Below, one piece after another: positions 4,764 to 60,165 of a DNA stretch of 64,000 nucleotides. This DNA comes from Paraphysomonas bandaiensis (Eukaryota > Protista > Chrysophyceae). Under the pieces are notes generated by a model. It did not search any database and was not told where the DNA came from. It saw nothing but the letters and a program-made list of their open reading frames with translations. How positions within the stretch are numbered: position 1 is the first letter of the stretch; each line of letters starts with the position of its first letter. Where the stretch lies: assembly GCA_965644295.1 (NCBI GenBank), contig CBFFRP010000421.1, forward strand, positions 1-64,000. The letters run 5' to 3'. A program made the position numbers and the translations under genes.

Positions 4764-5554
4764 TGTATGTATGTATGTATGTATGTATGTATGTATGTAT
4801 GTATGTATGTATGTATGTATGTATGTATGTATGTATGTATGTATGTATGTATGTATGTATGTATGTATGTATGTATGTATGTATGTATGTATGTATGTAT
4901 GTATGTATGTATGTATGTATGTATGTATGTATGTATGTATGTATGTATGTATGTATGTATGTATGTATGTATGTATGTATGTATGTATGTATGTATGTAT
5001 GTATGTATGTATTTATGTATGTATGTATGTATGTATGTATGTATGTATGTATGTATGTATGTATGTATGTATGTATGTATGTATGTATGTATGTATGTAT
5101 GTATGTATGTATGTATGTATGTATGTATGTATGTATGTATGTATGTACAGTATGTATGTATGTATGTATGTATGTATGTATGTATGTATGTATGTATGTA
5201 TGTATGTATGTATGTATGTATGTATGTATGTATGTATGTATGTATGTATGTATGTATGTATGTATGTATGTATGTATGTATGTATGTATGTATGTATGTA
5301 TGTATGTATGTATGTATGTATGTATGTATGTATGTATGTATGTATGTATGTATGTATGTATGTATGTATGTATGTATGTATGTATGTATGTATGTATGTA
5401 TGTATGTATGTATGTATGTATGTATGTATGTATGTATGTATGTATGTATGTATGTATGTATGTATGTATGTATGTATGTATGTATGTATGTATGTATGTA
5501 TGTATGTATGTATGTATGTATGTATGTATGTATGTATGTATGTATGTATGTATG
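4764..5554. repeat. (TATG)n microsatellite array, ~790 bp
   Basis: Near-perfect tetranucleotide repeat with interruptions near 5013 and 5148. Confidence 0.99.
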
Positions 5555-5748
5555 ATATGATCAGGTTAGGATGGTTTGGAGCTGCTGTTAATCGTCTCAT
5601 ATCTCCAGGAGAGTGTGCAGGCATAACTTCTCTGTTATGTAAAGTGTTTCCAATATGTCTGTATGTCATATCATTTCAAGCCATATCTAAAATAGATATA
5701 CTCATATCTGTTGCCTTTAGTTTGATATCGAGAGTTTAGTTTTTAGAA

Positions 5749-8700
5749 ATGATTCGAAACACTTCAAAGAGATCTTTACCTTCATTCGATGCCGCACCAC
5801 TTCCAATACTCAACAGTCCAGAGTACACATCGTCTAATCCTCAATTAAATCATTTGTTTATTGATAATCAGTACTTTAGTGAGCCATGGCATTCAGATTA
5901 TTTTATGAATGTATGTAACCCGCTGCCTCTAGTTTTATATGAAATACTAATGTGATGATATTAGGCCCCTGAAGAAAGTCATTTTAAAGAGCCATGGAGG
6001 TTGAAAGAAAAGATGAAAACTTCTGGAGTTGCCCTAGTTGTTTGTTTAAACATTGGTGTTGATCCTCCCGATATTGTCAAACCTGCCAATTGCGCTCGCC
6101 GTGAATGTTACTTTGACCCGAGCATCGCACCCAAACAAAAGAGTTTGGAGATCATCGGCAATTCACTCCAGACACAATACCAGAAATGGCAATCAAAAGC
6201 AAAGTATAAGCAGTGTCTGGACCCGACTGCTCATGAGCTGGAGCGTATTTGCGTAAACCTGCGACGTCAGGTAAAGAACGACAGACTGCTTCTCCACTAC
6301 AATGGCCACGGTGTACCAAGACCCACAAAGAATGGCGAGATGTGGGTATTTGGGAAGCACTATACGCACTACATGCCAGTGTCAGTTGATGAATTGAGGG
6401 GTTGGCTGGGCGAGCCTTCGATATTTGTACTTGACTGCTCCGGGGCGGGCGCATTGCTGCCTCATTTCCGGGATCCATTACATCACTCAAGCGATAATAA
6501 AAGCTCTCAAGATATATACGCTGGCAACCGAGAAGGGACAGACCGCCAGTCTAGCCTTTCCAATGTTGATAGTGACCGTACGAATGGTGGGGCGGGTAAG
6601 CCCAACGCGAGTGCTCCTGATTCTTCCTGTATTGTGCTCGCGGCGTGCCAAGCGGATGAAATTCTTCCGGTTGACCCGCAGTATCCTGCCGACATCTTTA
6701 CAGCTTGTTTAACCACCCCTATACCCATCGCCCTTCGGTGGTTTATTGTACAGGTATTCGTCCTGTATACTTCCGTATTCTGTATCTTATGTTTGCTTTA
6801 CTGTTATCTACATTCTACAGAACCCGCACCTTTCTTCTGAGATGAGTCTTGATATTGCCGAGAGCATTCCTGGAAAAGATACAGACAGAAAGAGTCCTAA
6901 AGGGTTGTTGAATTGGATTTTTACGGCAGTTGCAGACACTATAGCCTGGAGCGTACTGCCATCTTCCATGTTTCAGAAAATGTTTAGACAGGACCTACTT
7001 GTGGCGTCCTTGTTCCGGTGAGTTGACAAGAAATTCAAACCTTAACGAATGTCTCACTATATATGATTTAAGGAATTTTCTTCTTGCCAAACGCATTATG
7101 CGTAGTTTCAACTGCACACCGCAATCACAGCCATCACTCCCGGACTGTTCTACCCACCCCCTGTGGCAAGCGTGGGACTCTGCCGTAGAGCACTGCCTAC
7201 TGTACGTCCGCTCGCTACAAAAGGCTGGTCCAGGAGGGCTAGGAGACGGTCAGACAGGAGCGGCCGTCAGTGCCCAGCGAGCGGTGGGGCAGGGGAATGG
7301 AAACTCTTCACCAGTCATACAATCGTCATTTTTTAATGATCAACTTATGGCATTCGAAGTTTGGCTCGACTTTGGTGGGCCCGGGGGTTGCTACAAGGAC
7401 AACAAAGAGCCCCCTGTGTGTCTGCCTATCCTTTTACAGGTTAGAGAAACATTACAATCACTTTATTACTACAATCACGTTTATCATGCCGTTGCACCAT
7501 ATATAATCTTTGCTGTGTTGCATGTAAATTGCGCTTTATGTGATATACTAGGCATTACTATCACACGCACATCGTCTGAAAGCACTCCATTTGCTCCGAC
7601 GGTACGTCACCCTGGGACCTGAGGCCGTGCATTCCATCCTTGCTGTCGGTGTATTCCCCTACATTCTGAGACTATTGCACAACCCTGTGGCAGAAATCCC
7701 ATATGTACTCATGTCTATATGGACTTATGTTATTGGGTTTGACAACTCTTGCCGCGAAGAGCTTGTTAAAGATATTCGAGATAAAGCAGAGAGTAAGTTC
7801 TTACAGTGTCTGAAGAGCACGGATGCTCCCTATCCGGAGCGTACAATGGCTGCATTTGTGCAGGCGGAAATATGCAATGGCTATCGTGCCGGGCAGCAGG
7901 TGTTTCTCAATCTTAGCGTGCACCGTGTGCTGTCGTCACTCCTTGCTGAGCCAGATGTGATGTGTCACTCACACCTCAAGAAGTGGATAGCGCTTTGTCT
8001 ATGTAAAATATGTGAAGACTTTCCTCAGGCCAAACGACAGTGTATAGTTGACGAAACCCACTTTTACTTATACCCGCTACTGCAAGATTCCCACCCGGCT
8101 GTGCGAACAGCAGCTGTGCTAGCGCTGGGGGAGCTTTTTGGCGCATCTACGTTGGTTTACCCCGCTGTGGCCCCACCGGACACTAAACTCACTCAAGAGC
8201 AAAGCGATATTCGATCAAAAGAATTAGAAATTTCTATGCAAATTCTCGAAAGTTGCGCAGATGGCTGTGCCGCGGTGAGGAGGGAAGCTATCATTGCGCT
8301 GTCCAAGGTACGCCATGTACAGTTACACATTGACTTCTATATGGAAACTTTTTTATCATGAGGTTAGTAACATAATACTTTTATGTACAGATGGTTTTGT
8401 TACCCATTCACTACGAATACATCAAGCTGATTGCTGTTTCAATTTCATCTATCACCGGGGACACGGAATCATTAGTTCCCGACGAGGAGCCTCCACAACC
8501 CACCGCATATGGTACACCCAAGACATCCCCCAATCGGCCATCTTCCAGCAAACACTTTTCTCCAACGAAGCCTAGTAAACAGACCCCGAGACAAACTCCA
8601 AGTAAGAGTACTAGGGAGAAACGTGACAACACGAGCTCGTCACCACGAGCAACAAGGCCCAACTGGAGCATTAGTCCGAAACAGTCTGCCGAGTTGATTG

Positions 8701-11446
8701 ATAGCATCACAATGTATGTGGAACGCCGTGAATTGTGTGGAGACGCGATGTCACAAAGCCAGAGCGTGTTGTGGAATTGTGCTCCCGATGTAGCTCATTC
8801 AGTACCACCGTCTCATGCTCCTCCGCCATTGGAGATTGATGAGGACAATATGATATCACTGGAGGATGTGCCAGAGAGCATAGAGTTTAGTTTCCCGAGG
8901 TTAGATCCAACATTCATAGTATGTATATTTAGTCACATATTCACTTATAGACATATTGCCTCCTCATACGTTCAGTTGTGGTTGTGTCTTCTGGAAGTGC
9001 AAAAGAGTGACCCCCATCCTCCCGTAGCCAGGGCGGCGAAGGCAATCTTTTTTCATATTAAAGTGCAGGTGCTAGATCATGAAATTGTGCAAAACATTCC
9101 ACAACATTGATGTGGTCATCTGTAGATAGTTTTGATTTGTCAATGTCATATTATTGTTATTTGCTCATATCACACGATGCAGATGACTAGGGAGATGCTA
9201 ACCGAGCCGACCGAGAAAGGTGACCTTGCTGGTAGTGCCCGTCGAAGTGAAGGTGGTTGGGGTGGGGCCCCTATGAACCTACGAGACCTGCGGGACCCCA
9301 CCCGCCCTATATCTCAAGATATATATCGTTCCAGTCCACGGGCTCAAGAACGACCTCCTCTGCATGGCCTCTCGTCAGCGTCTCCCCTATTTCTCGCCAT
9401 CCCTGAAGGGTCCCCTCGAAATGGCGACGGCGACCGGCGTCCAGCCACGGCCTTTGCTTTGGAGGGGGTTGACAGTGTAACCAGTGACCACGGACAACAG
9501 AAGATGGCGTCAGATCTTGCACTCATGAGTAACGCATACGACTGGAATAGGTACGGCCGGTTCCAATTTTTTCTGTTTTAATGTGTTCTTTTCGCTGTTC
9601 ACATTTATAGAAAGTTTTTTTTAAGGCCTGATATGGGGTATGATCCGGTGTGTGACCTTCTCAGTCCTGAGGGACGAGAGCGCTCTAATCGGTGTGTATA
9701 TTGTGGGTTTAGTGGCTGAGTATGCGAATTTAATCATTCTATTTCAGACTGTTGATGCGGGCAGAAGTCACAGATCTCTCAAACCGAATCGCCGAGAGTT
9801 TCCGCCCTATTCATGACAGTGGTCTGGCAACCTTACTGATGGAAAAGGACCTATCTCCAGATTCGAATGAGAGCTATATGCAGTCGGTGGTGCATACTAA
9901 CAACAGTGGAAATGTCGTCGACCAGCCGCAGAGACAGGGGATGCATGCAGCTCTGCTGCCTTCCTCCCTTACGAAGTTTGAGAGCAAGGGTATATTACGC
10001 GTAGAAAATGCATCTTTGACATCGAATGCGATGTTTCATGCATTTCACGATATCCTAGCGGTCTCTGATGACAAGGGGGTTGGTATTTGGTCACTAGATA
10101 GTGGGACTCAGATCATGCATATAAAATCAGCTTCCGCTTCCAACTCATCTACTTTACTTAATTCAACTGTTGAACCCTCGCTGCCTCTTGGCTCAACCGG
10201 AAAGCGTGGTAATTCTGTTCCAGCCTTTACCGGCCAAGACAGTGCACTAATCACAAGCATGTCGTGGGTAAACGAGTCTCTCGACTCGCTGCTCATGGTT
10301 GGTAGCGAGGACGGAGCGGTGAAGATATGGCGCGATGTCGGGGACTCAATAGACGACACGCTACGAGCATCACTGGAGGGTTCAGCTAGTAGCTCTGAGC
10401 ATAATGCTGCCTCGGGTGTTGTCCTTGCCTCTGCGTTCAAGGCGTTACCAGATATTGCTGGAAGCTCTGTTGGTTCGGGAATGGTGATGTCATGGCAGCA
10501 AAGCGCAGGACTACTGAGTGTAGCGGGAAATAGCCCCGTGATCCGGTTGTGGGATGTCTCTCAGGAGAAGTGCGTGACAACATTTCAAACAGGAATGGAG
10601 ACGTGTACAACTACTCTAGTCTCACAGACATCTGCAGTTCGTGGGGGGCTAGATGCCACCTCATCATGGGGGTGCAGCATTGCTGGCCGAAATGCGGATG
10701 AATACCTACAACCTGGATCTGGATCCATATTTGCCTGGAGTTTTGCGGGGTTCGCTGACGGATCAATTGGAATATACGACCAGAGGGTGGATTCCCGAGG
10801 AGGCCGGGTGCATGCCGCGAAGGAGCATGACTCGTGGATAGTTGGCGCCTATCTACGGGCGGATATACCAGAAGTAAGTGTCATTACCTAGGCTAATATA
10901 TATGAATGGATAAGTTACGTTAAATTTGATACCGTTTAAGGACATGAGTGTGTTTATGCTGTAATGGGCTGCGGTGCAGGTTATTACTGGTGCTGTGTCT
11001 GGAGGAGTGAAATTCTGGGACATTCGCTCTATGCGTTCATACAAGACTATAGAGGTAGATTTTATGTTTAGCTTAAAGGCACAGTATGTGCTAATGAATC
11101 CATTTCTTTTGTGTGTAGGTCCACAAGTCACCACTTACTGCATTGAGTGTCCATAATTGTGCGCCCATCATGGCCACCGGTTCCCAAGCACAGTTCATAA
11201 AGATACTTACTCTGGCTGGAGATCAATTAGGAATGATTAGGTAGGTAGTATAGTGCTTCTGAGTGTGAAATAGCCTTTCTCTACAAGATTACTATACTGA
11301 TTGTGTACGACTGCAGGTATCATGATGGCTTTATGGGTAACAGGATTGGTCCCGTTTCGTGTCTAGCCTTTCACCCTGTCCGTATGTTGATGGCAGCGGG
11401 ATCAACAGATAACCTCCTATCTATATATTCAATTCCAGATGGATAA
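5749..11446 (+). CDS. RPTOR: Regulatory-associated protein of TOR (RAPTOR/KOG1), multi-exon
   Basis: RNC domain WRLKEKMKT...[66 protein letters not shown]; HEAT repeats; WD40 C-terminus ending [21 protein letters not shown]...SIPDG* (TAA 11444-11446). ORF pieces are joined by GT-AG introns, the first at 5911-5964. Confidence 0.96.
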
Positions 11447-11618
11447 TTTAATTCTGTGGTGGTTATATTCCCAAGTCTATCCGAGAAGTGTGTATTGTAG
11501 CTGGTTACTGTGGAATTTTTAATAATTAATAGTAAATTGTGCATTCGAAAAGTGATACTAGCACATCTTCACGGAAGCATAGTTTTGATACACCGCAATA
11601 TATTTTTTGATAAATTAG

Positions 11619-11963
11619 GCACCTGCACACGAAGGTGAACTCGATGAAGAGAAAGATGAGGAGGAGGAAGACGAGACCATTCGTTTACTTAAAGACAACC
11701 GAAAATGCAAAAAAGCACGCACCAAACTGCCAACACAATATCGTTGCATGAAGCATTTGTATAGCACTACCAATGCTTGTAAGAGGTTGTTTAGCAGAGC
11801 TAAGATTGTTTTGACTGATTTTCGCAAGCGAATGACACCTAGACACCTTGAAATGTTGATTTCTCTGCGTGCAAATCGGCATCTTTGGGATGATATTATA
11901 GTTCAGAAGGTATATCAAGTATAATTGCAATTATAATTGACTCTAGCTTGCTCCAATTAATTG
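11619..11963 (+). pseudogene. hAT transposase C-terminal (dimerisation) fragment plus subterminal sequence
   Basis: Translates ...HLYSTTNACKRLFSRAKIVLTDFRKRMTPRHLEMLISLRANRHLWDD, matching the hAT C-terminal pattern TSNxxERLFS...R..M.P..LE...L..N..LW. Confidence 0.8.
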
Positions 11964-12444
11964 TTAGTTAATTGCAATAAATTAATCAAAATAATGCCAC
12001 CTTTTTATGGTGAAAAGTTATTAAAAATCGTAATTTTTATAGCAAAAATCCAATTTTTAGGATAAAGTCGAAGATTGATGAAAGATTATAATATTCATAT
12101 TGAATGTCTTATTATTTAGCAATAGGCGTTGAATATAATATCCATAGTAGGATTATCTCACATAGCATAATTTCATTTAATTAATTAGCGATATGAACGA
12201 TAAACTGTACCAGAAGTCTTTGAGAAAATCAATGATAATAACGAAGAGCTTGCAAAAGAGACTCCACATTAGCCATGATTGACCGCTACTTGCTTCTATC
12301 TAATCATTTGCGATCATGCGAGTTTGGTTCCGACGTGTTAAAAGTCTAATACCAAGTGAAAAGGTGCATGTCAAGCGTGCAATTACGGGAGGAATTGGAA
12401 TTGTTTTAACTCTAGTGTCCATACAATTATATAGAGGTAAGGTA

Positions 12445-12935
12445 GATACCAGCTTGACCTCCACGACGTTTGTACATTGTTTGACGAACTAATCATAAGG
12501 CACCCGATTGTTGAGCGTCATCTGGGTGACAATGCTGCTATTATTATTTATAACTCTGCTTTCAAAAAGGCAGTCGTGAAGATTCAATGTGGCAACGAAA
12601 TCGTACTAACTTGGACGGAAATGGATCAAATTAAAATATATTTGCTCGATGATGATGATGAAGATTATGACAGTGAGAGTCTAGTTCCAAATGACGACGC
12701 AGCGCAACGTTAGACTAATGTAGCAGGAGGCGGAAGCGTGCATGACTTAGCCAGCAAACTCGTTACCGCAACATGAAGCACTTGCATGCCACAACCAATA
12801 AGATTGAAAGGTTGGTCAGTAGAGCTAAGATTGTTATGACGGGCTTGCGCAAGAGCTTGACTCCTCGACATTTAAGAGCTACTTATTTTTTTACGCATGA
12901 ACAGTTGCCTCTGGAATGAAATGACAGCTGAGGTA
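12445..12935 (+). pseudogene. Second degraded hAT transposase fragment
   Basis: LFDELIIRHP...AFKKAVVKIQCG, then after a stop and frameshifts HLHATTNKIERLVSRAKIVMTGLRKSLTPRHL/ELLIFLRMNSCLWNE. Confidence 0.75.
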
Positions 12936-12984
12936 GCTATATATTGTTTATGTTTGCTACTCAAGTTAGTTTTCCGGAAAAATA

Positions 12985-13200
12985 TCTCCGGTACTTATCC
13001 CCCAGAACACCACGTAAAGGTGCGAGTCCGAATTTGTTGAGGGTATATTTTTGTAATGATCTGTAAGAGCATGCCAGTGTAAACCTCCACGACGCCTTGA
13101 ACTTCCTTCGCATCAACAAGTACTTGTGGACCACGAAGACAGTTCAACAGTTCATCGATGATAGACCGTCCAATCATGACGAGAATGAGTTGGAATACTT
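12985..13200 (+). pseudogene. Third, highly degraded hAT C-terminal fragment
   Basis: TT*RCESEF...KSM...FLRINKYLWTTKTVQQ across frameshifts. Confidence 0.45.
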
Positions 13201-14134
13201 AGAGTACTGGCTGCTGCATTGCTACTGGGCTTTCATCATCACATGTTGTAACGTTGTAGCCTCTAGCCTCTAGTAACTAGTTACTACCAATCTATCTAAT
13301 GTTTTCTTCTCAGCGCCCAAAATATAGTAGAGAATGTCTTATTATTAACAATAGGAGTTCAAGAGTCGAAGTAATTTAGCATTGGAATTTATTATTGGTA
13401 TTCTAGTTTATTTCATTTTTTGCCAACAGAACTTTGCTATACATAGATACATAGCACTATAGTACGCATATATCATGTATAGTGTATCCGTTACATTCTC
13501 ACATTTATGGCCTGTAGCTAATATATAAAACTTATGAAATGTCTTCTCTTCTCTTCACATGTTCTCTTCACACCTACTGCAGTATTTATTGCAAAAAGCA
13601 TCAAAAAACTCAACATTTTCAAAAATTTCACTAGGTTTTGACCGTTTCACCAGGTTTGGTCATCACATCGACTTAATATATTGCAACATATTGTTATCGG
13701 GTCCTGCTAAACACGAAAAGAGCTAATTCCTACTAAATATTTTGTGTGATCAAAATGGAGATAATTTCAATCTAATAATAATCGCAGAGGATTCTGTGAT
13801 ACGGATAGAAGCAACAAGCAAAAAACTTTTAAATATTAAACTATTTTACTGTAGTGTATACAATATAATCTATACTGTACCCAATTTAATATTTATTCAT
13901 AACCCATTGTAATAAAGTAGTATAAAACGCGCAACGTTAGAACAAGTATTGTACATAATGAAAACTAAAAATATCATGTATATCGCAACGTGAAGAAATC
14001 ACAATATCAGTACATTAATCAGCAAAATAACGTGGTATAGACATATTAAATATTTGAGCATATCTGCAGCATTAAGTATAACAAAATTATACCCCTCATG
14101 GATAAATGCTTTATATATCGGTTCCGATAAATAG

Positions 14135-29324: not shown

Positions 29325-29462
29325 GAGAGCTCTATGGGTGGAATGAGAGACAGAGCATTAGTACAAAGGAATACAAGTAGAGGGTGGGAGGTAGAGTGGA
29401 GATACCCTGCGGATCCTAACGAAGCATTTAAAGACTACACAAACCTCATACGTCTATATAAC

Positions 29463-29964
29463 CATACATACATACATACATACATACATACATACATACA
29501 TACATACATACATACATACATACATACATACATACATACATACATACATACATACATACATACATACATACATACATACATACATACATACATACATACA
29601 TACATACATACATACATACATACATACATACATACATACATACATACATACATACATACATACATACATACATACATACATACATACATACATACATACA
29701 TACATACATACATACATACATACATACATACATACATACATACATACATACATACATACATACATACATACATACATACATACATACATACATACATACA
29801 TACATACATACATACATACATACATACATACATACATACATACATACATACATACATACATACATACATACATACATACATACATACATACATACATACA
29901 TACATACATACATACATACATACATACATACATACATACATACATACATACATACATACATACA
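29463..29964. repeat. (CATA)n microsatellite array, ~500 bp, between divergent WDR81 and VPS37
   Basis: Perfect tetranucleotide repeat. Confidence 0.99.
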
Positions 29965-30081
29965 GATACTGTAGTGTAGATGTAGCTATGTGATAGGTGT
30001 GTATATGTATGTACCTGTAGGACACTTCTCCTAGTCTACACTATCATTCCCAATGAAGTGATATCATTCGAACTAAACAGT

Positions 30082-46156: not shown

Positions 46157-46281
46157 ACTACACAAACTGAATACAGCAGCTTGTAGAGCACAACACACTA
46201 CAAATATACTATACTAACATCGTATAGTTTCCAGGATGCACTCCACTGACAGTTGAATGACAGCGACAACCCCTCACACAG

Positions 46282-46608
46282 ATGTATGTATGTATGTATG
46301 TATGTATGTATGTATGTATGTATGTATGTATGTATGTATGTATGTATGTATGTATGTATGTATGTATGTATGTATGTATGTATGTATGTATGTATGTATG
46401 TATGTATGTATGTATGTAGGTAGGTAGGTAGGTAGGTAGGTAGGTAGGTAGGTAGGTAGGTAGGTAGGTAGGTAGGTAGGTATGTATGTATGTATGTATG
46501 TATGTATGTATGTATGTATGTATGTATGTATGTATGTATGTATGTATGTATGTATGTATGTATGTATGTATGTATGTATGTATGTATGTATGTATGTATG
46601 TATGTATG
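46282..46608. repeat. Compound (TATG)n-(TAGG)n-(TATG)n array between divergent MOB and SMARCC genes
   Basis: A TAGG block at ~46417-46480 is embedded in the TATG repeats. Confidence 0.99.
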
Positions 46609-46663
46609 GAGGCATTCAAATGTTAGTCTGTCATCTGTTGGTGCATTTAAGGTTATCAGTGCA

Positions 46664-49158
46664 ATGTCTTCTCTAGTTAGCAAGAAGACGGGTGCTCCAC
46701 TCGATTCCAACTTGCATGACCCTCTGATTGTGCAGAAGTATGCGGGTTTGGCTGCTGAATTGCGGGCGGATGGGTTCGAACTTGTTAATGAACAGTCTCT
46801 GGCTAAACTCTCTTATGATATTCAACTATTTATGGAGGTATATAAAAATCAGTGTTAGTACTTATATTAATATGATATATCGACAGGAGTTTTTGGGTAG
46901 GAAGGCACCGGCGCCCAGAAAGATGGTGCGATTGCCACACTCAGTGTTCAAAGACCTCTCAGTGGGGGGCTCGATGCACCTTATCTTCAAGACAGCTTAC
47001 CGTAAATTAAGTGTAGCGGAGTGGAAGAAATTTGATGTGTTAGACTCATCGAATACGGAGACTATGTATTCTATGTTGTTAGAAATGCAAAGCAGTCTAA
47101 TTGATGTGAGTGGGATGTACATGATACATCTGTCCGTAGTTAACATTAAACGTGAATTGCAGAGAAAAGCTATTAATAGGCCGAGTATATACTTTTCTCC
47201 ATCTCTTTCGTCTGATCTAATCGAAGAGCTTGGGATTATAGCCCAGGCACATGGCGGTAGAATTGTTAGTGATATCCAGGATGCTAGTCATGTAGTGGAA
47301 TGGGACGACGAGGTAGATGGGCAAGGGGTCGCGGAAGAGTTTTTCCGCCCTCTAGAGATCCGTCCACACGCCGGAGAAGGAACCGCTCTAGTTCATTGGT
47401 GGTATACTCCAGATAGTTATGACGAGTGGGTACCATCGCAGGGAGTAGAGTGTCGTGAAGTACCCGAGGACCCCTTCACACACCAACATACCAAACAGTG
47501 GCGAGTGTGTTGCCGATTCGTGCGGGATGTAGAAGAATACAACGAGTGGGGTAATGAGTTGGATTACGAACTAGAAGACCCTGAGGAAGCTGTGAGGGAA
47601 GGTGACCGGACAGGGGCTGGTACTGGAGGACGAAAGAAACGTGGTAGGCGTAGGGTGGACTCGAATGCAGCTTCGAAGCAACAAGAAACGCCTGTAGCAG
47701 AGGCAGAGCAGGTAACAGAGAGAATGATGCAGAGTCTAGCACCCCCCACAGAGGACCCTTTGTTTAATATGTCAAGCTCTGGTGGTAGTGTTAATGTTGT
47801 GGATATTCAAGGAGACCAGTGTGAAATGAAGAGAGAGCAGCCAAGTGAATCGAATCAGTCACCATCAGGAATGAAAGAGTCAGAATTAGGTGAAAGGGAG
47901 GAAATTAGCAATGGGAATAGAGCTTCTCCTACCAGTCCTACTGCTGCCGTGATTAGTGGTGCTAAGCGGAGCAGAGACAGTGACCGGTCAGATTGTCCAA
48001 TGCACAGAAGGAAAAGGGATCTATTGTTGGGCCCCTCGGAACGAGACAGTTCTACGCTGCCGTCCTGGTTTAGTCTGGAAACAATCAGCCCAGTTGAACA
48101 CCGATATCTACCAGAGATATTCGGCGGAACTTCTCTTAAATCAGATAAGAATTCAAACGATGATCGGGTACCTGGAAGTCTCCGTCATCGCTACATCAGC
48201 ACCCGTAATTACATACTCGACCTAAATTACCAGCAGCCCCTAGTGTATTTGTCGGCCACTGAGTGTCGACAGAAGATGGCAGGCGATGCTGCTTTCATAA
48301 CACGTATTCATGAGTTTTTAGATGCGTTTGGGGTGATCAATACAAGCACTGCGATAAGGCACACTACTAGACCCCCCAAATGTCCAGCTTTTTTTTCGAA
48401 TTGTCCATCCAATGCTGAGGTGGAGGCCCACTGCAATGCATTCAAATCTGTCATTTCACCAACAGGAAAGGGGCGAGAAGGTCGTGCAGAAGAAATCCGG
48501 TGGAGTGCTGAGGCGGATGCAGCAATATTGCAGGCTGTGTCCTCAATGTGTCCAGAAGGGTCCACTCAAAGTGATATTGACTGGCGCAGTGTAAGCAAAG
48601 CAGTGACGGATTCTGTGAAACGCTCGGATTCTAGCGCGGTCTTCACCCCTGAAATTTGCTTCAGGAGGTTTGTGGAGATGTCTTTGCCGGCTGTATCAGA
48701 TGAAGGACGTGGAGTACCATGCGTTATTTCAGTTCCTCGAGTGGTTACTGGGAGTGGCTCAACACGGCAAGTGAGGGCACTTGCAGCCACAGTATTGACT
48801 AAGTGCGCTTGCCACATGGACTTTTTTACAGCGTCAGCAGCCTTGCGGGTGTCAAATGAAATACTAAAAAAGAAATCAGAAGGAGATAGGAAATCAGTTC
48901 AATCTGTCATGCAGTCAGGCACAAAAAGCAATGTTCCCAAAGGAAATACGGGAAGCAACATCACTCGTCGACTTGAGACTCTAGAGGAGAAGGTACATAG
49001 TGTCGTCAATCTATACATAACATCTCATATCTGTACCGCAGATGAAACTAATGGAAGAAGTAGAAGCAGCTCTTGAGATCGAGAGAGAAAGAATTGAACT
49101 AGACAGGCGCGTTTTGCGAGTGCAACGTGCGCAATTGGCTTTTCATCAACCGCACTAA
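46664..49158 (+). CDS. SMARCC: SWI/SNF subunit SMARCC/SWI3 (BAF155/170-like), multi-exon
   Basis: N-terminal module with chromo-like LVHWWYTPDSYDEWV and YNEWGNELDYE; SWIRM LPSWFSL...YLSATECRQKMAGDAAFITRIHEFLDAFGVIN; SANT-like region; coiled-coil end. Confidence 0.9.
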
Positions 49159-49497
49159 CTGCAGTAAATTGTGATTGTGATGTAGTTGTTCCGTGGTTGT
49201 GTCGAGTCGTGGTTGAGCACCTTGATCTAGTAATTAGTAGTGTAGTCTTTTATGCATTAGTTATACAATTTTCGGCTCTATAAACGGTGTTATAATATTG
49301 TGTTGCTGCTTTATAGTAAATTTCTTTCGCCTGGCAATTAGTGTACCTAGTTTTCATAAATTGTGTAGATACTGTACACTAGACTGACTTGTTACGGTGG
49401 TGTAGTTTGCGCAATATGTACACCTATTTAGTGATGTTGTGTTTGTAATATCTCCATGAAGTCGTGAAGTAACATGTACACCTGGGTTAGGGAACAA

Positions 49498-49604
49498 CAG
49501 CGCTGCGTATCAATTAATTGACGCAGGTTGTAGTCAATTATAATTGCAATTATGAATCGACGTCCCAATTTCAATAATTAACAATTAATTGATAAGCAGC
49601 CCTG
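49498..49604. mobile_element. 107-bp hAT MITE
   Basis: 23-bp TIRs CAGCGCTGCGTATCAATTAATTG / CAATTAATTGATAAGCAGCCCTG (two mismatches); exact 8-bp TSD GGGAACAA at 49490-49497 and 49605-49612. Confidence 0.92.
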
Positions 49605-49626
49605 GGGAACAATAGCACATGCTAAT

Positions 49627-49998
49627 CAGGGCTGCGTAACAATTAATTAATTGTTAATTATAGGAATTGCAATAATTGATATTGGGACATCAAGTACTAA
49701 TTTCAATTTTAATTGGTCAAAACTTGAGACTGCATATGTGTAGTATGGAGTATGGATGTATAGATCATAGATCAGTACTGTCACACAATTATCATTAATA
49801 ATGATAAAGTGACTGTGAACAGTGCACACGTGCACACACATCAATATTCTTCTATGATAGCATCGATTAGTAGCTATACAGCTTAAGGTGCTATCCTTAT
49901 AATTAAACCAGCCAATAAATTGCAATTAATTGGCAACATTTACGAATAATAATTGCAGTTGTTATTTTTTACTTGCAGTTATAATAATTGCAAGCCTG
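49627..49998. mobile_element. Related hAT-type non-autonomous element, degenerate or composite
   Basis: Starts CAGGGCTGCGTAACAATTAATT, ends AATTGCAAGCCTG, and carries AATTGC/CAATT subterminal motifs; no matching TSD. Confidence 0.55.
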
Positions 49999-50144
49999 GT
50001 ATAGATATACAGGTAGAATAATCTGTTGTCTCGACTTCACAGAGATCTATGTTACTGTTACTTGCTATTGTAACTGCACTAACTTCACCGCACAAACATC
50101 TCTACTTGAACTAATTTTCTATCTTGCGATTATAATACAATATT

Positions 50145-51093
50145 CTACGATGCTACCATGGAGTTATCTTTATGTTCACTAGATACTACAGTGTCAACAG
50201 GTACATCGTGAGCAGGGGCTGCGGGAAGTACAGGAGTGGTGGGAACCTCGGGCATACTGATATCAGTATTCTGAGAATTCTGTTCAGGCGTGCGTTCTCT
50301 CTCACTTTCCGCATTCTCCCTCGCCATTATCATCTGCAATACAAAGTGTGAGCCAAGTGAGCGTGAAGTCTTATGTATATGAAATATACCTCGAGCTCTG
50401 CCTCTAACTCACTCTCGTCCGCTAAAGTGAACTCTCCAGCAACTAGGGTACTGATTTCATTCTCAATCTGTCAAGTGTAGGTGATATAATATAGCAGTCG
50501 TCTTTATCATTTTTTTACCTCCCTCGCTTCTCTAGTTTCTTCCATCAGTCGCTCAACATCTTCGACTGACATCTCCTCATGAAGCTTTTTTAGGGCATCG
50601 GTGCCAGCCTTCAGAGCGCGCAGAGCCTCTATATTATGAGACTCCCATTCAATTTCTTCTATCTGTGAACAAATATTCAACATCGGAGACATTTTATTTC
50701 AACTGCATGATACCATCGACATGACATTCAGGAGTTTCGCATCAATCGAGTCCGCCTCTTTTATCTTATGCTTACGTAATTTCAGTGCAAGCAGAGCTCG
50801 ATCCTGTGATCCCATACTGTTAATATCAACATAAACCAGCAGCAGTCATGTGTACCTTTTTACCAGAAGCTAACAGCTCTTTAGCCTGATTCTGTAATCT
50901 CTCTGACTCTGTACCTAACTACAGTCATCATAAGTAGAGAGATGTTACCCCTTATTATAAACTGTACCCTCTTTTGGTATTTAAAGAGTTTGTCTCGAAC
51001 TATCTTTAAGTCGAGTATAGCACGATCTTTCTCAGATATGGAACTCTGCGCTTGTTTTGGAGGTGATTTAAGTGATTTAAATATATTTCCCAT
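50145..51093 (-). CDS. VPS20: ESCRT-III subunit VPS20/CHMP6, multi-exon
   Basis: MGN myristoylation start; ISEKDRAILDLKIVRDKLFKYQKR; ALKAGTDALKKLHEEMSVEDVERLMEETREA; MIM2-like MPEVPTTPV. Confidence 0.92.
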
Positions 51094-51198
51094 TGTAAGG
51101 AATTGATTGATAGTATAGTATGTTGAATGGTTGTTATATATGGATTATATAGAGAGGCATGCCTGTTAAAGTGTTAGTACAAGCAGGAGGTGTACACT

Positions 51199-51251
51199 AT
51201 ACATACATACATACATACATACATACATACATACATACATACATACATACA
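51199..51251. repeat. (CATA)n array, ~13 units, between divergent VPS20 and TTC12
   Basis: Perfect repeat. Confidence 0.97.
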
Positions 51252-51747
51252 CACTATTCCTATTAGTATACTACACTGTAGTACTATATACTACTCACTG
51301 TACTTTATACAGTTTGCAATATATATATATGCTGTACAGTACCGTAGAGTGATGTGTCCGAATGTGCGGTGCGTTCAAGTAGAATGCTGGACTCTGCACA
51401 GATTACGTATATCACAGATGCACTATACAGTCCTATGATACGGAATACAGTGGTATACTCGTCTTCAAGATTCGGAAAGATCCCGTTTATCCCAATATTC
51501 TCCTGTAGTCTAACACTCTCACCTACATTCCAGCCGTTTCTCCATCTAGTGTACCGGAGTACAGACAAGATGTGTCCAGCTGCACAATATATACAGTATC
51601 TAATGTATGTATATGTACTTATATATATATATATATGTACACACAGCAGTACAGTACAGCGCAGTACCATGCAGTCATTCTGGAAACCCATCAAACTAAG
51701 TAACAATCAGCCCACAATCAGTGCAGCTGTTAATTAAACATCAAACA

Positions 51748-54637
51748 ATGAACGTTGACAATATTCTGAATATTGAGGTATTGCTATTTATACAGTGGTA
51801 ACATACACTCATGATTATCTGTATAGAAAAGGACTGGTATCAGTAACAGTGATATCGATGACTTTGTTAGTAAAGCAAGTGCTGTTGAAGAGGCTGTGAA
51901 AGCTTTACGTGAAGGAAAAGTAGCCCCTGAAGATGTTAAAGTTGAAGGAATAGAAACTGAAGAAGAAAAAAAAGAAAAAGAAGTAAATTATATATAAATA
52001 TATATGTATATATATTCACATATTTAACAGTTGAAGAGACTCAAAAGAAGAGAAGAATTAAAGAGAGAAGAAGAAGCATTGCGTCTTAAAAGAAAACAGG
52101 AAGAAAAGGAGAGATGGTGGGCTGGTGCAGAGATGTATGCTGCTCGTAAAGATGATGAAGAGAATGCTGATGATGAGACGGATGAAGGAACAGTACATTC
52201 GAGAAGTATGGCACGATATTCCGCAGATTATTCGCGATGGGAGCAGTGGACTCCCAATGATCCGGCTACTCTCCAGGAGGTGTGTTTGTGTATGCTCTCT
52301 GAAACTCTCTTGTCCTTGTTAACGCATTTATGTTGTTTCGAGTAGAGGCAAGAAGAGGAGGCAGCTGCTGATGAAGCTCGTAATAAAGAGTTCGAGAACA
52401 GTAATCCGGAATTCTGTAAACAGTTTCTAGAAGATATGGAAGCTCGTAAGAAGGCTTCAGAGAAAAAGCTGCAAAGCGCTAACGCCTTGAAACTCAAAGG
52501 GAACAAGTACTTCAAGGCGAAAAAGTACACTGAAGCCCTCACACACTACATGGACGCCCTCAAGCAAGCGCCTTACGACGGTGTGGCCGTGCTTACTAAT
52601 ATCGCCCAGGCCAATATTAAGCTCCAGAATTATGAAGATGCTGTAGAATTTCTTAACCGTGCGCTGTACCTTCAACCGGATAATGTCAAGGTAATTTTTT
52701 CGGTTTGCTGCCATTGCATTAGTAAGTTGTGTCTGCAGGCATTGTCCCGCAAAGCTTTCGTGCTTGGGGAACTGGTAGGCGGGGAAGAAAACATTCAAGA
52801 AGCTCTGCGGTGCGCTGAGAGGGCCCATAAAGTTGATCCGTCTTGTGGTGAAGTGGAAGCACAGTTCAAGGACCTGACGATTGCCTTAGGTGACATCAAG
52901 AGTGAGAAGGAAGTGAGGGCATTGGCGGATGCACCCGAAAGAAAGAAGGTGGCAGATATACACAACACTTTGATTCAAGGTGAGGGGGATGATAAGGCTA
53001 TGGCTGGAGCTCTACAACAACTAGCAGAGGTGGCGACTCTTTCTTCCACAGGAGCAGCACCTGGCCTAGCAGTGATTGATACTCTACAACTACTGCTTCA
53101 GAGAGACGATCAAAACGAAAAGGTAAATGAAGGACTTGACAAGGCCGTTTTAGATAGTGCGATGGATGTGCTACGGGAGGATAGAGCTGCTAGAGTATAT
53201 CTGCGCACAAGCGGAACTCTTGCTGTACTTGTGGAAAAGATAAAGTCTCTCCTTACTTTGAATGATACCACTGGTGAAGAAGCTAAAAGTCATCTGTCAT
53301 TGGGCTCGTTGCTGCAGATGTTGGCCACAGCTGTGAGCGGAGAGAGGCCGTCTAAGATAGTGGTTATGGATGATCCTGTCGTACTTTCTTCCGTGAAATC
53401 CCTTTTGGGGATGGAGTCTACGCCGGTTGACACCTTATATGGATGCATAAGTCTAATCGCCTCTGGCATTGAGGACACTTTCTTGAAGATGAGATCACTA
53501 CTACTGAAGGACAAGTCGCTGTTATTAAACCTAGGCGCTGCCTACTGTCACCTAAACGATATATTGACTTCCAGACGATCAGTCCATTCAAAAACACCTG
53601 AAGCCGTCAAGGCTTGTTGTGCAGTGATTAGAGATTTGTGTTTCTCGCAAGAGGGAAAGCAGCAGATGTCGTCCGTGTCTTCGCCCATTGTTTCTATTCT
53701 TGGATCCTCTCTCATCTCACATGTTAAGAAGCCCATGGCTCAGAGCACCGAACTTCTTGAAATAACTTTGGAGACATTGCTGGGATGTTCTCAGAGTGAA
53801 GTGCTCAGAGGTGCTTTCGCGGACCACCTCGTAACCACAGGAGATTCTGAGCTGACTACTGTTCATGCAATACTCCGCCTGACTATCAAGCACAAATGGT
53901 CGATTCCAAATGGACTTGCAGTTCTTATGAACGTTACTATTCAGGATGCGCCAGAAATGCGCCGACTGGTATATGACGCTGGCGGGATGGATGTCGTCAT
54001 GAATGTACTGCAAGCTCATGACGGTGCTGATGTTAGCGAGTATTCACGGGTTCGCGCTGCTGGTTTATTGTCTCGCATGACTGGGATAGACGAGGTGCAA
54101 GGTGTACTGAGATCCGCATCAACGTATCGTATGTTGTGTAACAGGCTCTGTAAAAACTGTGAGTTGACAGGCGACAAGGTAGAGAAATGGGTCATTGACG
54201 AACGAGCTCAGTTAGTTCGTGTTCTAGCTTCTGTTACCAATCCTCCCAAGGAATGTATTCGCGAGGGGGCGAATGCTGGGATCGTCCGGTCGCTTTTGAG
54301 CTGTCTCCCAATGCCAAGGAAGGAACTTCACCAAGTCACGCCTACATCTGTTATTCTTCCTCCTTCTGAGACGATTCAACCGGTACTACTGGGAAACATT
54401 GCACGGTGTCTGATGCCATATGCAGATGACACAGAACAAGCGGTAGAGTTGTATACAAATCAGAAGAATTATGGTGTAGAGAAGCTGATATGTATGATGG
54501 CTACATGTACAGATATGCGAGTGCGTAAGAACATAGCGATATTACTGGCAAAAGGGTGTAGAAACCCTTCTACTAGACAGCGTGTTGAGCATTTAAGAGG
54601 GCTACAGATGCTAGTTGAACTCCAGAAGCAACTGTAA
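51748..54637 (+). CDS. TTC12: TTC12-like TPR and armadillo-repeat protein, multi-exon
   Basis: N-terminal DIDDFVSKASAVEEAVKAL; TPRs ANALKLKGNKYFKAKKYTEAL...; long ARM region ending VRKNIAILLAK...LRGLQML. Confidence 0.75.
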
Positions 54638-55892
54638 ATAATTTAGTATGCGGTAAATGTTGTTTACCGTTATATTCAACTTTATATTTGAAGCGATTAC
54701 GTATTCGAATTTGCTCTATAGTGTTTGAAAATTGACCATACCTATTCATATGATGTGTCTTCCGCTCTAAATCATATGTCGATCTCTCTCTAGTAAACTC
54801 AAGCAGTGATTTATTAAATAATAGCATGAGATAATTTAGACGCAGTGTGTTTTGTTATTCTTCTACACATTATATTCCAGAATCCAGAACTATGCAATCA
54901 TTCTACAAAAAGAAGACAAGCACATATCTGTAACTGCTGTTGCTTTATTGAAATGCAACCAACCCCTACATTCATATTAATAGCTTCAGTAAAAGCATAG
55001 CGAGGACCTTTGAGTGCACAGCTTTAATGCATATGGCTCCATTTTAATTAATCCATAAAATAATTCCATTTTATAAATTATTAAATTATTCCATGTTATA
55101 TATTATTAAATTATTCCATTTTATTGTTTCTATATTATGGATTATGGTAGAACGTCCACAAGCCCGAGCGCAGTGCGACCAGGGAAGAGAATCTTTAGAT
55201 CCGGAGGGAGCCTGGCTTCTATGGTTTTTCATTTTAATTTATCTATAAAATCTATATCTTTTTTAAATAAATCCCTAAATAATTTTTTTTATTAATTTGA
55301 TAATTTGGCATTGGCATTTTAAATAAAACTATAAGAACTAAAAATACAATTAGAGATTAAAGAAATCATACAATATAATGTCATGCCAAAAATGCCATTT
55401 ACTTCATCACTACCAATAGCAGTAGCGTGTATATATTCCATCGCTACACTATGTGCGCATACTATAAACCTACTAGCTGCTGCACCAACACTATCAATAC
55501 GAATCATCTCTTCAAATACTATTGCAATCTGAAATGGTTTAAAGAATAATTTTTCACTTTTAATTTATTTAAATTTAAAACGCAATTAAAAACACTTAAA
55601 GATAATTTGATATATTATTATAAACGACTAGAATTTAATGAACTCAGGCATGATTGACGAGACTGACTATCGCGATTTGGTCGACATTCTACCATTATGA
55701 ATAAATCAATATACATACTACTACATTATATATGTACTATATTGCCGCATTTTTATTGCGAAATTCATAGTTTCTAGCGAGTACATTGTTACGCACTTAA
55801 TTAGTAATTAGTACTACTAGAGTAGGGCGTATAAGTAGTTAGATATGTAACCACGTGTAACATGTTACATGTTGTTATAAGAGGTTATATTG

Positions 55893-56753
55893 TTATCCCC
55901 ATTTTGTCTTAAAAAATGCTTTTTTTGACCTGATTTGGGCTCAACAGGGCGCTCATATCACCACCGGGCAAATATAGACATTCAACTTCAATGTTCGGTT
56001 CAACAGAAGCTCACTTCTATCTTCATTATATGATAATGACAGTCGTATGTATGTGATTTCATTATAGTACACTATTATAGAGAAACCACAATCATGAGCG
56101 AAACACCAAGAGCAGATCATCTAACTCCAAGTTATATTCCATCCTTCGACTGCTGTATAAGATCACAACGATGTCAGTGCAAGTGATCTGTCTTCATATC
56201 CAGGACTTCAAAACAACTTCAAGAACATTACAGGAGAGTTTAAGTACCATATCTGATGCTATATAGGTGGTTAGGAGCAGTGGCACCCAGTTCTTTCAGG
56301 GTTTGAGCCATATCGTGCTTCTCAGGATATTGTGTGTTTCGTATCATACACACATCATTCGATCAGGTGCACTTGCAGAGGTAAAGCCTGCTGTATATAA
56401 GTGTGATGATGATGCTAATTAAGGAAATAAGAAGCCTCTCTCTCACCTTCAACTGTTTACATTTATCATCACACTTACAGTATACATATCATTGATTTGA
56501 AACTATATGAGTTCTCATTTGTGTTATTAATGTTAATCAAGGAACATCTATTTCTTTATACAGCAAGCATGCTACAAATAGCTATACAATCTAATATTAA
56601 CTTTTCAACGTCATGAGGATAAGCTACAATTTAGCGTAGGGATAAGGAGTATCGTCCCTTGTCTAAATTTTAAAACTCGGACTTTTCGCCCTCGTTTCAA
56701 AATTTTGAGCGCGGGACGATATAGCCTCCTTATTGCACATGGTTAAATATAAC
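55893..56753. repeat. ~860-bp dispersed repeat, copy 1
   Basis: Colinear, near-identical direct copy at 62404-63265; subterminal palindrome at 56650-56721; flanked by TATATTG on both sides. Confidence 0.93.
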
Positions 56754-57146
56754 TATATTGATTTGTAGATTGGTAGTACTAACGACAATTAATGCAAGGA
56801 GAAATGTTTATCACAATTTAAAATACTGAGAGTATTTAAAACACACACAACACGACGACGAAATATTTATTAATGATGCTGTCCCATTTTGAGTGCGTGG
56901 CCATAGTGTAGGCTCGCTTGTACACCATATATAACACCGAGAGTTTGCGCTGATTCTACCGCCCGCCTACCCATGTACCAACGTAGCTGATTTATTTGAG
57001 TATATTAACAAAGTATCAAATATAGACACTTTTACATGTAGACAACAGTCGGAAATGAAAACGCTGCGAGGTCTAACACTAATACAAGGAATTTCGGACC
57101 ACACGCCCATTCAACGAAATTCGTGGACTATTATATTCACACAGTG

Positions 57147-59631
57147 TTATAAAATTCCAGTAACATCAAAATCCCAAAGCTCTAAAGACTTGCGACAAAC
57201 ATCAAAATTTGGAGACGTTTGCGAGTTGAAACCGGGAACATCTATACATGGATCGATGCGCTCAACAACATTCAAAAGAACTTCGTCCATGCTTTGGCAT
57301 GATTCGAAGCTCGAGCTACTGAATATTTCGTCAACTATCGTTCGAAATAACCATGGATTTAAAAAACTGTTCAACGTTTTCATGGAATCTGCCTCCACAT
57401 ATCCACTGTACACTTCGGCGGTGTGCAATACATATCCAATATGACAAATAACGACTTCTACTATTGACCACATAACACACATATCTATTCCGCATTCATC
57501 TACACTGTGATACCTTCTATTCTGGTATGAAGCATTGTTTGATATGAAGGGACAGTCTTTGTACACCAGCATACCGGCAAAGCCAGTTACAATTGCGCAG
57601 CATGCGCGAGAAAAAGGGCGAAAACTACACGAAGGATACACCAGAGATCCGATGTGACACAACACACTTAAAGAAATTTTCACAATTGAATATTCCATAC
57701 ATTGACTCTCACTTGAGGAAGCAATTGAGCATGGTTCGAGCATATATCTGCAGGCTTGAATAAATCGCGGTCTAGAACACTGCGGAAAATCATCATCCAA
57801 CTTCAGTTCCTTCGCCTCAAACTTCGGTACTGACACATGGGTCTCGACTGGTTCCCCGGTGGAGAATAAAACTTCACGTATGACTCCTTCTCTACAGTCG
57901 AAATATCCCAGCAACAAGGCGTACACGCGAGATCGGAGACTCCTCAGAGCGGCGTACACAGAACAAGATGGAGTTATATCAGAGTCTTCAAAGGAAATAT
58001 CAATAGCATTTTCACAAAGCGATACTCTAGGGAGGTAAATACGGTGACGAATTACCAGGCGCAAGTCCCATGGGAGGTTGTTATCTCCCATGCTGTTTGA
58101 TATTTTTTTCGGATAATGAGATACAAATTGAACTACCTCGGAATCATGCTGTGAATGCGACACAGAGTTGGAGTTGACAGTGTACATTGCTTCAGTAGAA
58201 CTCAAGTAAGTAGCCAAGCGTCGGCATTCAACAGCTGTATTACTGCAGCATGGACTCCACCGGGGGCCCTGATCATTTCTAACCCACTGACATAATCCCC
58301 GGCACCGACTGTTCGTCAAAGCATTCTGGATGGATTGTGTGCTAATATCCAGTAGACAAGAAATCACAGAGACGGATATGTCTGAAACGCCTGGCCATAG
58401 TCGGTAAACGTCCGTGAGAAGCCGATGTGCAGCCTGCATGATTTCAATTAAAACAATATACTACAGTTCACTACAACGCTCCACTGAGGTACGACGGAAA
58501 TTACCTTCAGTGTATCAGGTGATGTCATTACATAGTCATTGTCAGCACAGCTACTTGGCCCATACTGCTGCAACACACTAAGCGCAGCCTCAATGTCACA
58601 ATCGATGTGCGCATCTTCTTGACAAGATTCTACTCCACTGTCGGCTTCATCATATATATCGTCCTGGTAGTGGCACTCTTTTGTGTCAATTTCACACTTC
58701 CTTTTCTTCTTCTGTTTCTTTTTCTTCTTTCGTGCTGAAGACTTCTGCTGGCGAGCACCACTATTGTTAACATTTCTAGAATGCACCAAGAGTAATGCGT
58801 GAATTCTCTCAAGTATTGGTGCAGGCGTTGTGTCATGACCCAATAGTGCGGACAACAGCCACATATGCTGTAAGTTTACATATTAAGGTAACATCGGTTA
58901 TGCTACATACAATAGTAGTTACATAGCAGTACCTGAGGAAGAACTCCAGTTGATCGCGATAGTCTGACACGGTCGACAACATGTGCAGAAATTCCAGAAC
59001 AAGCAGAGTACTCCAATGTCCACAAAGGAATTAGCCCTACACCTATCTCTTCAGACCTACCTGAGCTTCTACTGTAATTATAGGCTAGTAAATCTGAATC
59101 ATTACTAAGTATTGCAACAGCCCCAACAGAATTTGCAACTGAAATAATATCTCTATCTGCTTCTCCATAGGCTCGAAGCAATGTATGTGTGTCGCTTTCA
59201 TTTCCACCACCTGGTTGGAAAGAAAGAATAGCCATTGAAATGCACTCAACACTGAGCAATGGAGGCGGAACAGAAGATGCATACGAATATGGTTTCGATT
59301 CCAGTGTTGATCGAAGAACATCACACTGATTCTGAAGACGAGAAAGCTTAACACTGAGTCTGTTAGAGTCAGTGGGCCCATCAAACACAAACACTAAACG
59401 GATCTTAAGTCCGTTACATATTTCAAGAAACTCATTCACTGCTCTATGAATAAGAGTGTAGTCAGATAAGATATAGGGGCATGGACCGAGATATCTACTA
59501 CATAACCAGTGAGTATATGCGTTCCCGTCCACTACTATCACTGCTACACTATCAGACGAGTCTCGTGTGAAAAAAGAGGACACTGAGGACATGTTATGCT
59601 TGATGAAGGTCATCAGACCTCGAATTCCCAT
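57147..59631 (-). CDS. Asteroid/XPG-like PIN-domain nuclease family protein, 3 exons
   Basis: MGIRGL, VIVVDGN, VFVFDG, GEAD and ILSNDSD acidic PIN motifs; LLGHD helix-turn-helix motif. Confidence 0.82.
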
Positions 59632-59825
59632 TGTGGTTACTTGTGGGTTGATATGATGAGAGAGAACGACACTGTGCCTCTATGAGTGCATGTCTAGATG
59701 GTGTAAGCAACACTGCGCTGTACACTGCTGTACATGGATGAGGATAGAAGTGATACATACACCCACACACAACACTCCTCGTTCATTGGCTAATGACACA
59801 TACACTTCGCCTACCTGCAGTACCT

Positions 59826-60165
59826 ATACATACATCCATGCGTACATACATACATACATACATACATACATACATACATACATACATACATACATACATA
59901 CATACATACATACATACATACATACATACATACATACATACATACATACATACATACATACATACATACATACATACATACATACATACATACATACATA
60001 CATACGTACATACATACATACATACATACATACATACATACATACATACATACATACATACATACATACATACATACATACATACATACATACATACATA
60101 CATACATACATACATACATACATACATACATACATACAGGTACATACAGGTACATACAGGTACAG
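59826..60165. repeat. (CATA)n array with a TACAGGTACA variant tail, between divergent PIN-nuclease and glycosyltransferase genes
   Basis: Near-perfect repeat over ~59843-60138. Confidence 0.98.

Follow-up and report, generated by a model that had tools for sequence, protein, structure and literature searches.

Do the long arrays of a single tetranucleotide that stand beside gene starts in the chrysophyte Paraphysomonas bandaiensis act as promoters themselves, or are they repeats that have come to occupy promoter DNA? We examined this question in a stretch of 64,000 nucleotides (contig 421 of assembly GCA_965644295.1, accession CBFFRP010000421.1, positions 1 to 64,000; hereafter the window), which belongs to an assembly of 62.56 Mb in 669 contigs. 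A preliminary description of the window had reported five (TATG/CATA)n arrays next to start codons, four of them between head-to-head genes, and had proposed that each array is the functional core of a promoter and that its length may tune the expression of both genes. Our analysis confirms the observation and supports the association with promoters, but it does not support the reading of the arrays as promoter cores.

The amplification of this repeat is motif-specific, and the genome is not generally repeat-rich. An exact genome-wide search returned 127,451 occurrences of the (TATG)10 40-mer (62,434 + 65,017), and a search restricted to one of the four phases returned 826 run starts. These counts suggest ~3,300 perfect runs with a length of 32 bp or more, ~0.6 Mb in all or ~1% of the genome. 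The same kind of search found (TG)20 nowhere in the genome, (AT)20 six times per strand at two loci and (GATA)10 25 times at four loci. We then characterized 264 kb at closer range, consisting of the 64-kb window and 200 kb of contig 66 (C66:1-200000). All microsatellites longer than 100 bp that Tandem Repeats Finder detected in these 264 kb are of the TATG type, and the arrays, 13 in number, make up 1.45% of the sequence.

All five arrays of the window were reproduced by Tandem Repeats Finder where they had been described (Table 1). Four of them combine a purity of 95-100% with a length of 330-800 bp, and the fifth is 53 bp long. Read directly in the sequence, the T-A-T-G unit is a strict alternation of pyrimidine and purine (Y-R-Y-R) and contains one ApT. 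A pure (TAGG)n block at ~46418-46481 sits in phase within array 3, which indicates a variant unit spread by slippage and a rapid internal turnover of the array.

Array positions relative to gene starts

The distances from the window arrays to their start codons were also reproduced, to within a base or two (24-212 bp overall), as was the location of four arrays between head-to-head genes, which is given by gene orientation for arrays 2, 3 and 5 and by RNA for array 4. For the 264 kb as a whole we defined gene units by long open reading frames (ORFs) with a codon score, together with Pfam checks of the array neighbours, because hexamer and periodic Markov gene finders failed their reversed-sequence controls. 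This gave 66 units, or ~1 per 4 kb. The sample from contig 66 contains five long and three short arrays.

A comparison of array-to-start distances with random non-genic points in the 264 kb, akin to a genome-wide check suggested with the preliminary description, revealed an excess of arrays near facing starts. With curated starts, a facing start codon is found within 450 bp for 11 of 13 arrays when all those of 20 bp and more are counted, and within 400 bp for eight of the nine that measure at least 100 bp, whereas the probability that a random non-genic point has a facing start within 450 bp is 0.19 (binomial P ~1e-6 to 1e-5, or 1e-3 to 4e-3 if the null fraction is taken as 0.4). When crude starts were used for arrays and null alike, 8 of the 13 arrays qualified (P ~1e-3). 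Six of the 13 arrays (2, 3, 4, 5, C66:17037 and C66:146338) are located in divergent spacers compared with 24% expected, the probabilities for a random non-genic point being 0.24, 0.47 and 0.28 for divergent, tandem and convergent spacers, respectively. Of the six arrays in tandem spacers, five are confined to the tenth to fifth of the spacer that adjoins the start of the downstream gene. The unique DNA between the start codons of array-bearing divergent pairs amounts to 180-310 bp, and the array can take up most of the ATG-to-ATG interval. Although the sample is small, the association of arrays with the 5' sides of genes, especially with head-to-head spacers, is real.

The proposal that arrays mark promoters therefore stands in part. 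The 5'-side association is present in the window and, less cleanly, in contig 66, but about two-thirds of the divergent spacers have no array. An array is found in six of 18 divergent and ~5 of 28 tandem spacers, and thus not in most promoters as a core-promoter element would be. The 12 divergent spacers without an array, along with most tandem spacers and a tandem cluster of eight LVIVD genes (C66:101857-141175) in which we found no TATG arrays, contradict the idea of a general promoter system. The further statement that convergent spacers are free of arrays holds in the window and fails on contig 66, where the array at C66:47534-47636 occupies such a spacer.

Transcript ends beside arrays 3 and 4

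To locate transcription relative to the arrays, we aligned the assembled contigs of four sequencing runs, from organism A and from organism B, a strain ~99% identical, to positions 46609-52600. GT..AG joints of 49-66 nt are present in one run of organism A and in one of organism B, and these two runs are therefore RNA. The RNA contigs define a SMARCC transcript to the right of array 3 and a VPS20 transcript to the left of array 4, the latter a genuine spliced minus-strand mRNA, and they place array 4 between VPS20 on the minus strand and a tetratricopeptide repeat (TPR) gene on the plus strand. All nine introns in these contigs (46835-52344) are 49-66 nt long and have GT..AG ends.

The SMARCC contig begins at 46639, ~30 bp beyond array 3 (which ends at 46608) and 25 nt upstream of the ATG. 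For VPS20 the 5' contig end, at 51157, is identical in organisms A and B and lies 42 bp from array 4. The 5' leaders are short, ~25 nt for SMARCC and ~64 nt for VPS20. No RNA contig covers 51209-51608, and thus none extends across array 4, while the contigs of the TPR gene reach back only to ~51760-51850, at least 500 bp from the array. The contig ends and the absent RNA coverage together place the arrays in an untranscribed gap, with initiation 25-45 bp outside them; these 5' ends are the ends of assembled contigs, and the true ones may lie somewhat nearer the arrays. Both mapped 5' ends are thus in unique sequence outside the array, which does not support it as the functional promoter core.

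Further evidence is provided by the length of array 4, which measures 31 letters in organism B DNA and 67 in the reference, a difference at this one locus of ~36 bp or ~9 units. The 5' end of VPS20 is unchanged by this shortening, again counter to the promoter-core proposal, and the unmoved start site shows no dependence on array length at this locus. The same DNA run bears on the possibility, raised with the preliminary description, that the arrays are assembly artefacts not spanned by reads. A contig of organism B DNA spans array 4, which is real there, and another contig ends 23 letters inside array 3 at the same edge as in the reference. These data show that the arrays are real and length-polymorphic.

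One form of the SMARCC transcript in the RNA contigs of both organisms joins at least 255 foreign letters to position 46680, directly after the AG at 46678-46679. We considered an exon beyond array 3 as the source and rejected it, since 30 letters of the foreign piece have no match in the window at up to 3 mismatches. Its source may be an alternative 5' exon located elsewhere, or else a paralogue or a chimeric contig.

Origin of the arrays and competing explanations

Short runs of the motif are distributed unevenly around genes. TATG runs of 10-19 bp reach a density of 0.50 per kb in the 300 bp upstream and 0.40 in other non-ORF DNA, as against 0.05 in the 300 bp downstream and 0.03 in ORFs. 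ORFs and the 300 bp that follow stop codons are thus depleted ~10-fold (upstream versus downstream, Fisher P = 0.01), as would be expected if the runs were excluded from transcribed DNA. Over the 200 bp that precede ATGs (64 start codons, window and contig 66), sense-strand enrichment was found for the words TCCATA, CATATC, TCATAT and TCATAC, whose frequency increases towards the ATG; their complement is depleted near it. Such YCATAY-like words may represent an initiator-like motif of this organism and, because they share a CATA core, promoters may supply the seeds from which arrays grow. In four out of five divergent pairs the ATG on the CATA side is the one closer to the array (24, 40, 50 and 117 bp versus 194, 272, 152 and 138 bp). 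Array 3 is the exception, and the overall difference is not significant (P = 0.1); we regard it as a lead.

Two other origins were considered and rejected. Hairpin-driven slippage is not indicated, as for both strands the minimum free energy of folding was 0 kcal/mol and did not improve on that of shuffled sequences. The arrays are also not tails or parts of transposons in the 264-kb sample, where their flanks share only (AT)-type low complexity. A protein homologue search for orthologous promoters gave at most 35% identity, and a metagenome scan for relatives gave one, at 37% identity.

Several known systems offer a comparison. Unstable tandem repeats in yeast promoters were reportedly described by Vinces et al. 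in Science in 2009. Like those repeats, the arrays are located upstream of the transcription start site (TSS), in DNA that is untranscribed at arrays 3 and 4, and their repeat number varies between strains, here at one locus, array 4. Nucleosome exclusion has been proposed for the yeast repeats, with length tuning expression, whereas in P. bandaiensis an effect on expression is a candidate only; and where yeast has many motifs in arrays of tens of bp, here one tetranucleotide forms arrays of up to 800 bp. Promoter microsatellites, nucleosome exclusion and Z-DNA have been reviewed together (PMC5622345), and unstable promoter tandem repeats are also reviewed elsewhere (PMC3899988). Z-flipons are enriched in human and mouse bidirectional promoters, where negative supercoiling accumulates (PMC11294368), and (CA)n repeats are known from the promoters of CSF1 and HO-1 (PMC5622345). 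The arrays share with Z-flipons an alternating pyrimidine-purine sequence between diverging TSSs and a promoter-proximal position that is not that of a core element. They differ in that (TATG)n contains TA steps and is predicted to be the poorer Z-former, in line with the expectation for TA-step repeats relative to (CA)n or (CG)n, as PMC5622345 relates it from Ho et al. 1986, and in that the genome has no long (TG)n. The absence of (TG)20 argues against an amplification for Z-forming potential alone. Microsatellite enrichment has also been described for human promoters (PMC3566118) and for meiotic recombination hotspots of yeast (PMC2267716), which likewise show a non-random density peaking at gene starts or in open promoter chromatin; those, however, are statistical enrichments of many short motifs, as opposed to discrete, long and pure arrays of one motif. 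Poly(dA:dT) tracts, nucleosome-depleting elements of yeast promoters (Iyer and Struhl 1995, as cited in PMC5622345), likewise lie upstream of TSSs as sequence of low complexity and act through their physical properties rather than by specific binding, but they are stiff homopolymers, much shorter and present in most promoters, whereas the arrays are flexible alternating Y-R DNA. We found no description of (TATG)n or (ACAT)n at promoters in the literature on thraustochytrids, the group searched. Two papers on thraustochytrid genomes of 62-63 Mb, one with ~45% GC and the other with 50%, describe mostly simple or tandem repeats but do not refer to this motif or to where it lies.

The explanation we favour, to which we give an even chance, is that the arrays are a motif-specific, fast-evolving microsatellite residing in the untranscribed promoter gap upstream of TSSs, where they serve as spacer and not as core promoter. 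Most often they separate the core promoters of two head-to-head genes, and the majority of promoters do without them. Expansion in this model would be strongly motif-specific, with seeds that come from promoter DNA rich on the sense strand in words with the CATA core. Arrays would persist only in untranscribed DNA, since a transcribed (UAUG)n would add upstream AUGs to the 5' leader, as (CAUA)n would not. Once present, an array is probably a passive-to-modulatory spacer: AT-rich alternating pyrimidine-purine DNA may keep the gap nucleosome-poor, the array may absorb negative supercoiling from two diverging polymerases, and variation in its length would modulate promoter output without creating it. 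The degenerate arrays and the one array in a convergent spacer reflect birth and death of arrays and count in favour of this explanation.

A number of points weigh against the explanation of the arrays as spacers. The position analysis is based on only 13 arrays in 264 kb, with gene starts taken from ORFs and not from annotation, and the enrichment of promoter words is partly inflated by paralogous upstream regions. For the 5' ends the evidence consists of assembled contigs at two loci, as opposed to cap analysis of gene expression (CAGE). Both genes concerned see the array in TATG orientation, which leaves room for a start inside the array on the CATA-sense side, and in three cases the CATA-sense ATG is only 24-50 bp from the array. 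Tolerance alone also does not explain why only this motif expanded, and a simple Z-DNA rationale is incomplete because (TG)n, the better Z-former, has no long arrays.

Alternatively, the arrays would be under selection as elements of chromatin or topology, alternating AT-rich DNA that excludes nucleosomes or flips or unwinds under negative supercoiling and thereby insulates and boosts diverging promoters, as a cis-regulatory class serving ~10-15% of genes. We consider this possible but unlikely. The extreme motif specificity, the high purity over as much as ~800 bp and the way arrays fill the centre of otherwise very short divergent promoters all agree with it, and it has precedents (PMC5622345, PMC11294368), whereas the lack of long (TG)n, the arrays that have decayed or lie in a convergent spacer, the many promoters without an array and the reduction of array 4 in organism B to ~4 units with the VPS20 5' end unchanged do not. 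Stated more fully, and held just as tentatively, the arrays would be a dedicated class of selected cis-elements at ~3,000 sites, the nucleosome-free, torsion-buffering centre of promoters and especially of bidirectional ones, recognized by a specific factor or adopting a non-B structure, with a possible start inside the array on the CATA-sense side that gives an AUG-free leader, and they would act as a landing pad for several transposon classes.

The original proposal, that the array is the promoter core (a factor platform, a TATA-like or initiator array, or an island of N6-methyladenine (6mA)) at or in which transcripts would begin, and that its length sets the output of both genes, we find improbable. 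It draws on the TATA-like distance of 30-42 bp between the array edge and both mapped 5' ends, on the close spacing of some CATA-sense ATGs, on the CATA that the repeat unit shares with the words enriched before ATGs, and on an MT-A70 gene, for which one locus, a lower bound, was found in the genome. However, the 5' ends are outside the arrays, array 4 has no RNA coverage, the TPR gene starts far from it, a difference of nine units does not move the VPS20 5' end, two-thirds of the divergent promoters and the LVIVD cluster do without an array, and one array is in a convergent spacer. In described systems, moreover, 6mA is located downstream of TSSs in linker DNA, which counts against a 6mA-island core. 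We see similarly little prospect for a link to recombinases or transposons, in which (TATG)n would be the preferred target of mobile elements such as tyrosine-recombinase Cryptons, Mutator-like elements (MULEs) or copia, recurrent exchange at the 4-bp unit, either site-specific or unequal, would expand arrays and make them homogeneous, and the location at promoters would reflect open chromatin. Motif specificity and purity do fit a sequence-specific process, and the genome contains a very young family of copia elements (at least 40 near-identical copies), but no array flank in the 264 kb shares transposon sequence and the copia element beside array 1 ends well short of it. That the assembler made the arrays or their lengths is barely credible: the lengths of the window arrays do rest on the assembly and not on spanning long reads, yet array 4 was recovered at a different length, and array 3 entered, by the independent DNA run of organism B, and thousands of arrays have unique flanks.

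Neighbouring genes, repeats and significance

The genes next to the window arrays are listed in Table 1, together with the arrays and transcripts.

Table 1. Arrays, transcripts and array-proximal start codons in the window and in C66:1-200000 (window arrays as called by Tandem Repeats Finder; C66 positions carry the prefix)
Feature	Position	Strand	Description	Distance from array
Array 1	4764-5559		(TGTA)198, TATG-type on + strand, 99% matches	
Array 2	29463-29964		(CATA)125, 100% pure	
Array 3	46282-46608		(ATGT)n, 82 copies, internal (TAGG)n block	
Array 4	51199-51251		(ATAC)13, 53 bp	
Array 5	59826-60158		(ATAC)82, 95%, degenerate ends; perfect core 59843-60138	
Long array	C66:17037-17240		between head-to-head genes	
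Long array	C66:146338-146816		between head-to-head ankyrin gene and prefoldin gene	152 and 50 bp
Long array	C66:48898-49340		near minus-strand gene start	384 bp
Long array	C66:78369-78662		near BTB gene start	399 bp
103-bp array	C66:47534-47636		convergent spacer, between 3' end of Orai-like + gene and stop codon of - gene	
Degenerate arrays	C66:49526-49665, C66:57172-57219, C66:162966-163073			
SMARCC transcript	46639-49311	+	RNA contigs; three GT..AG introns of 49-57 nt	
VPS20 transcript	50036-51157	-	RNA contigs; five introns of 49-56 nt	
RAPTOR ATG	5749		right of array 1	189 bp
BEACH/WD40 gene ATG	29324	-	array 2	138 bp
+ gene ATG	30082	+	array 2; earlier label VPS37	117 bp
gene ATG	46156	-	array 3; earlier label MOB	125 bp
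SMARCC ATG	46664	+	array 3	55 bp
VPS20 ATG	51093	-	array 4	105 bp
XPG/PIN gene ATG	59631	-	array 5	194 bp (211 bp from perfect core)
+ ORF ATG	60183	+	array 5; earlier label GT47	24 bp (44 bp from perfect core)

The gene names proposed earlier are borne out in part. Pfam matches to Raptor_N for RAPTOR, to Beach and WD40 for the minus-strand gene at array 2 and to SWIRM for the SMARCC-like gene agree with them, and XPG_N, found through homologues of the ORF to the left of array 5, agrees with the PIN label. For the names VPS37, MOB, VPS20 and GT47, single exons gave no Pfam match. ORF lists of the region also contain spurious long ORFs created by the arrays, for example at 4726-5739 and 29334-29993.

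On its left, array 1 is separated by 1.18 kb of unique, ORF-poor DNA from a Ty1/copia element whose 3' end is at ~3581. The pol gene of this element is the ORF at 45-3158 (RVT_2 and rve by Pfam), and the element is cut by the contig start. We considered an insertion of this copia element in array 1 and rejected it: because the element ends at ~3581, array 1 is not inside it. At least 40 other copies of the family at 92-100% identity were found, and several other contigs begin inside the element; the family is very young and breaks the assembly. A second repeat, short and of high copy number, is located at 49490-49920 in the convergent spacer between SMARCC and VPS20, where the word depth in organism B DNA reaches ~32,000 compared with ~90 nearby and many joints are rearranged. 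It may be an element like a miniature inverted-repeat transposable element (MITE), and its presence shows that TATG arrays are not the only repeats a convergent spacer can contain in this genome.

Contig 66 has further features of its own. The LVIVD cluster comprises at least eight same-strand genes whose products contain LVIVD repeats and, in one case, a CUB domain. Each ATG is 18 bp into its ORF, and in three members a (TGAAG)6.6 repeat is present ~220 bp upstream of the ATG. On the minus strand at C66:165601-188844 is a single ORF of ~7,747 codons, with a 32-bp TATG run 222 bp upstream of its ATG and no Pfam match for its N-terminal 615 residues. A Ty3/gypsy-type pol (RVT_1, RNase H, rve) occupies the minus strand at the very start of the contig (C66:158-4141). 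No light-harvesting family was found in the genome, and the sequencing runs that contain it are marine.

In practical terms, the arrays break short-read assemblies and yield spurious ORFs, and they define compact bidirectional promoter fragments for expression constructs. They also make two questions testable, namely whether repeat length tunes bidirectional promoters and what drives the expansion of a microsatellite in a motif-specific manner. A single tetranucleotide, amplified more than 5,000-fold over the other microsatellites tested, makes up ~1% of this compact genome. Whereas promoter tandem repeats are known as a diffuse phenomenon of many motifs, here a single motif lies largely in promoter gaps.

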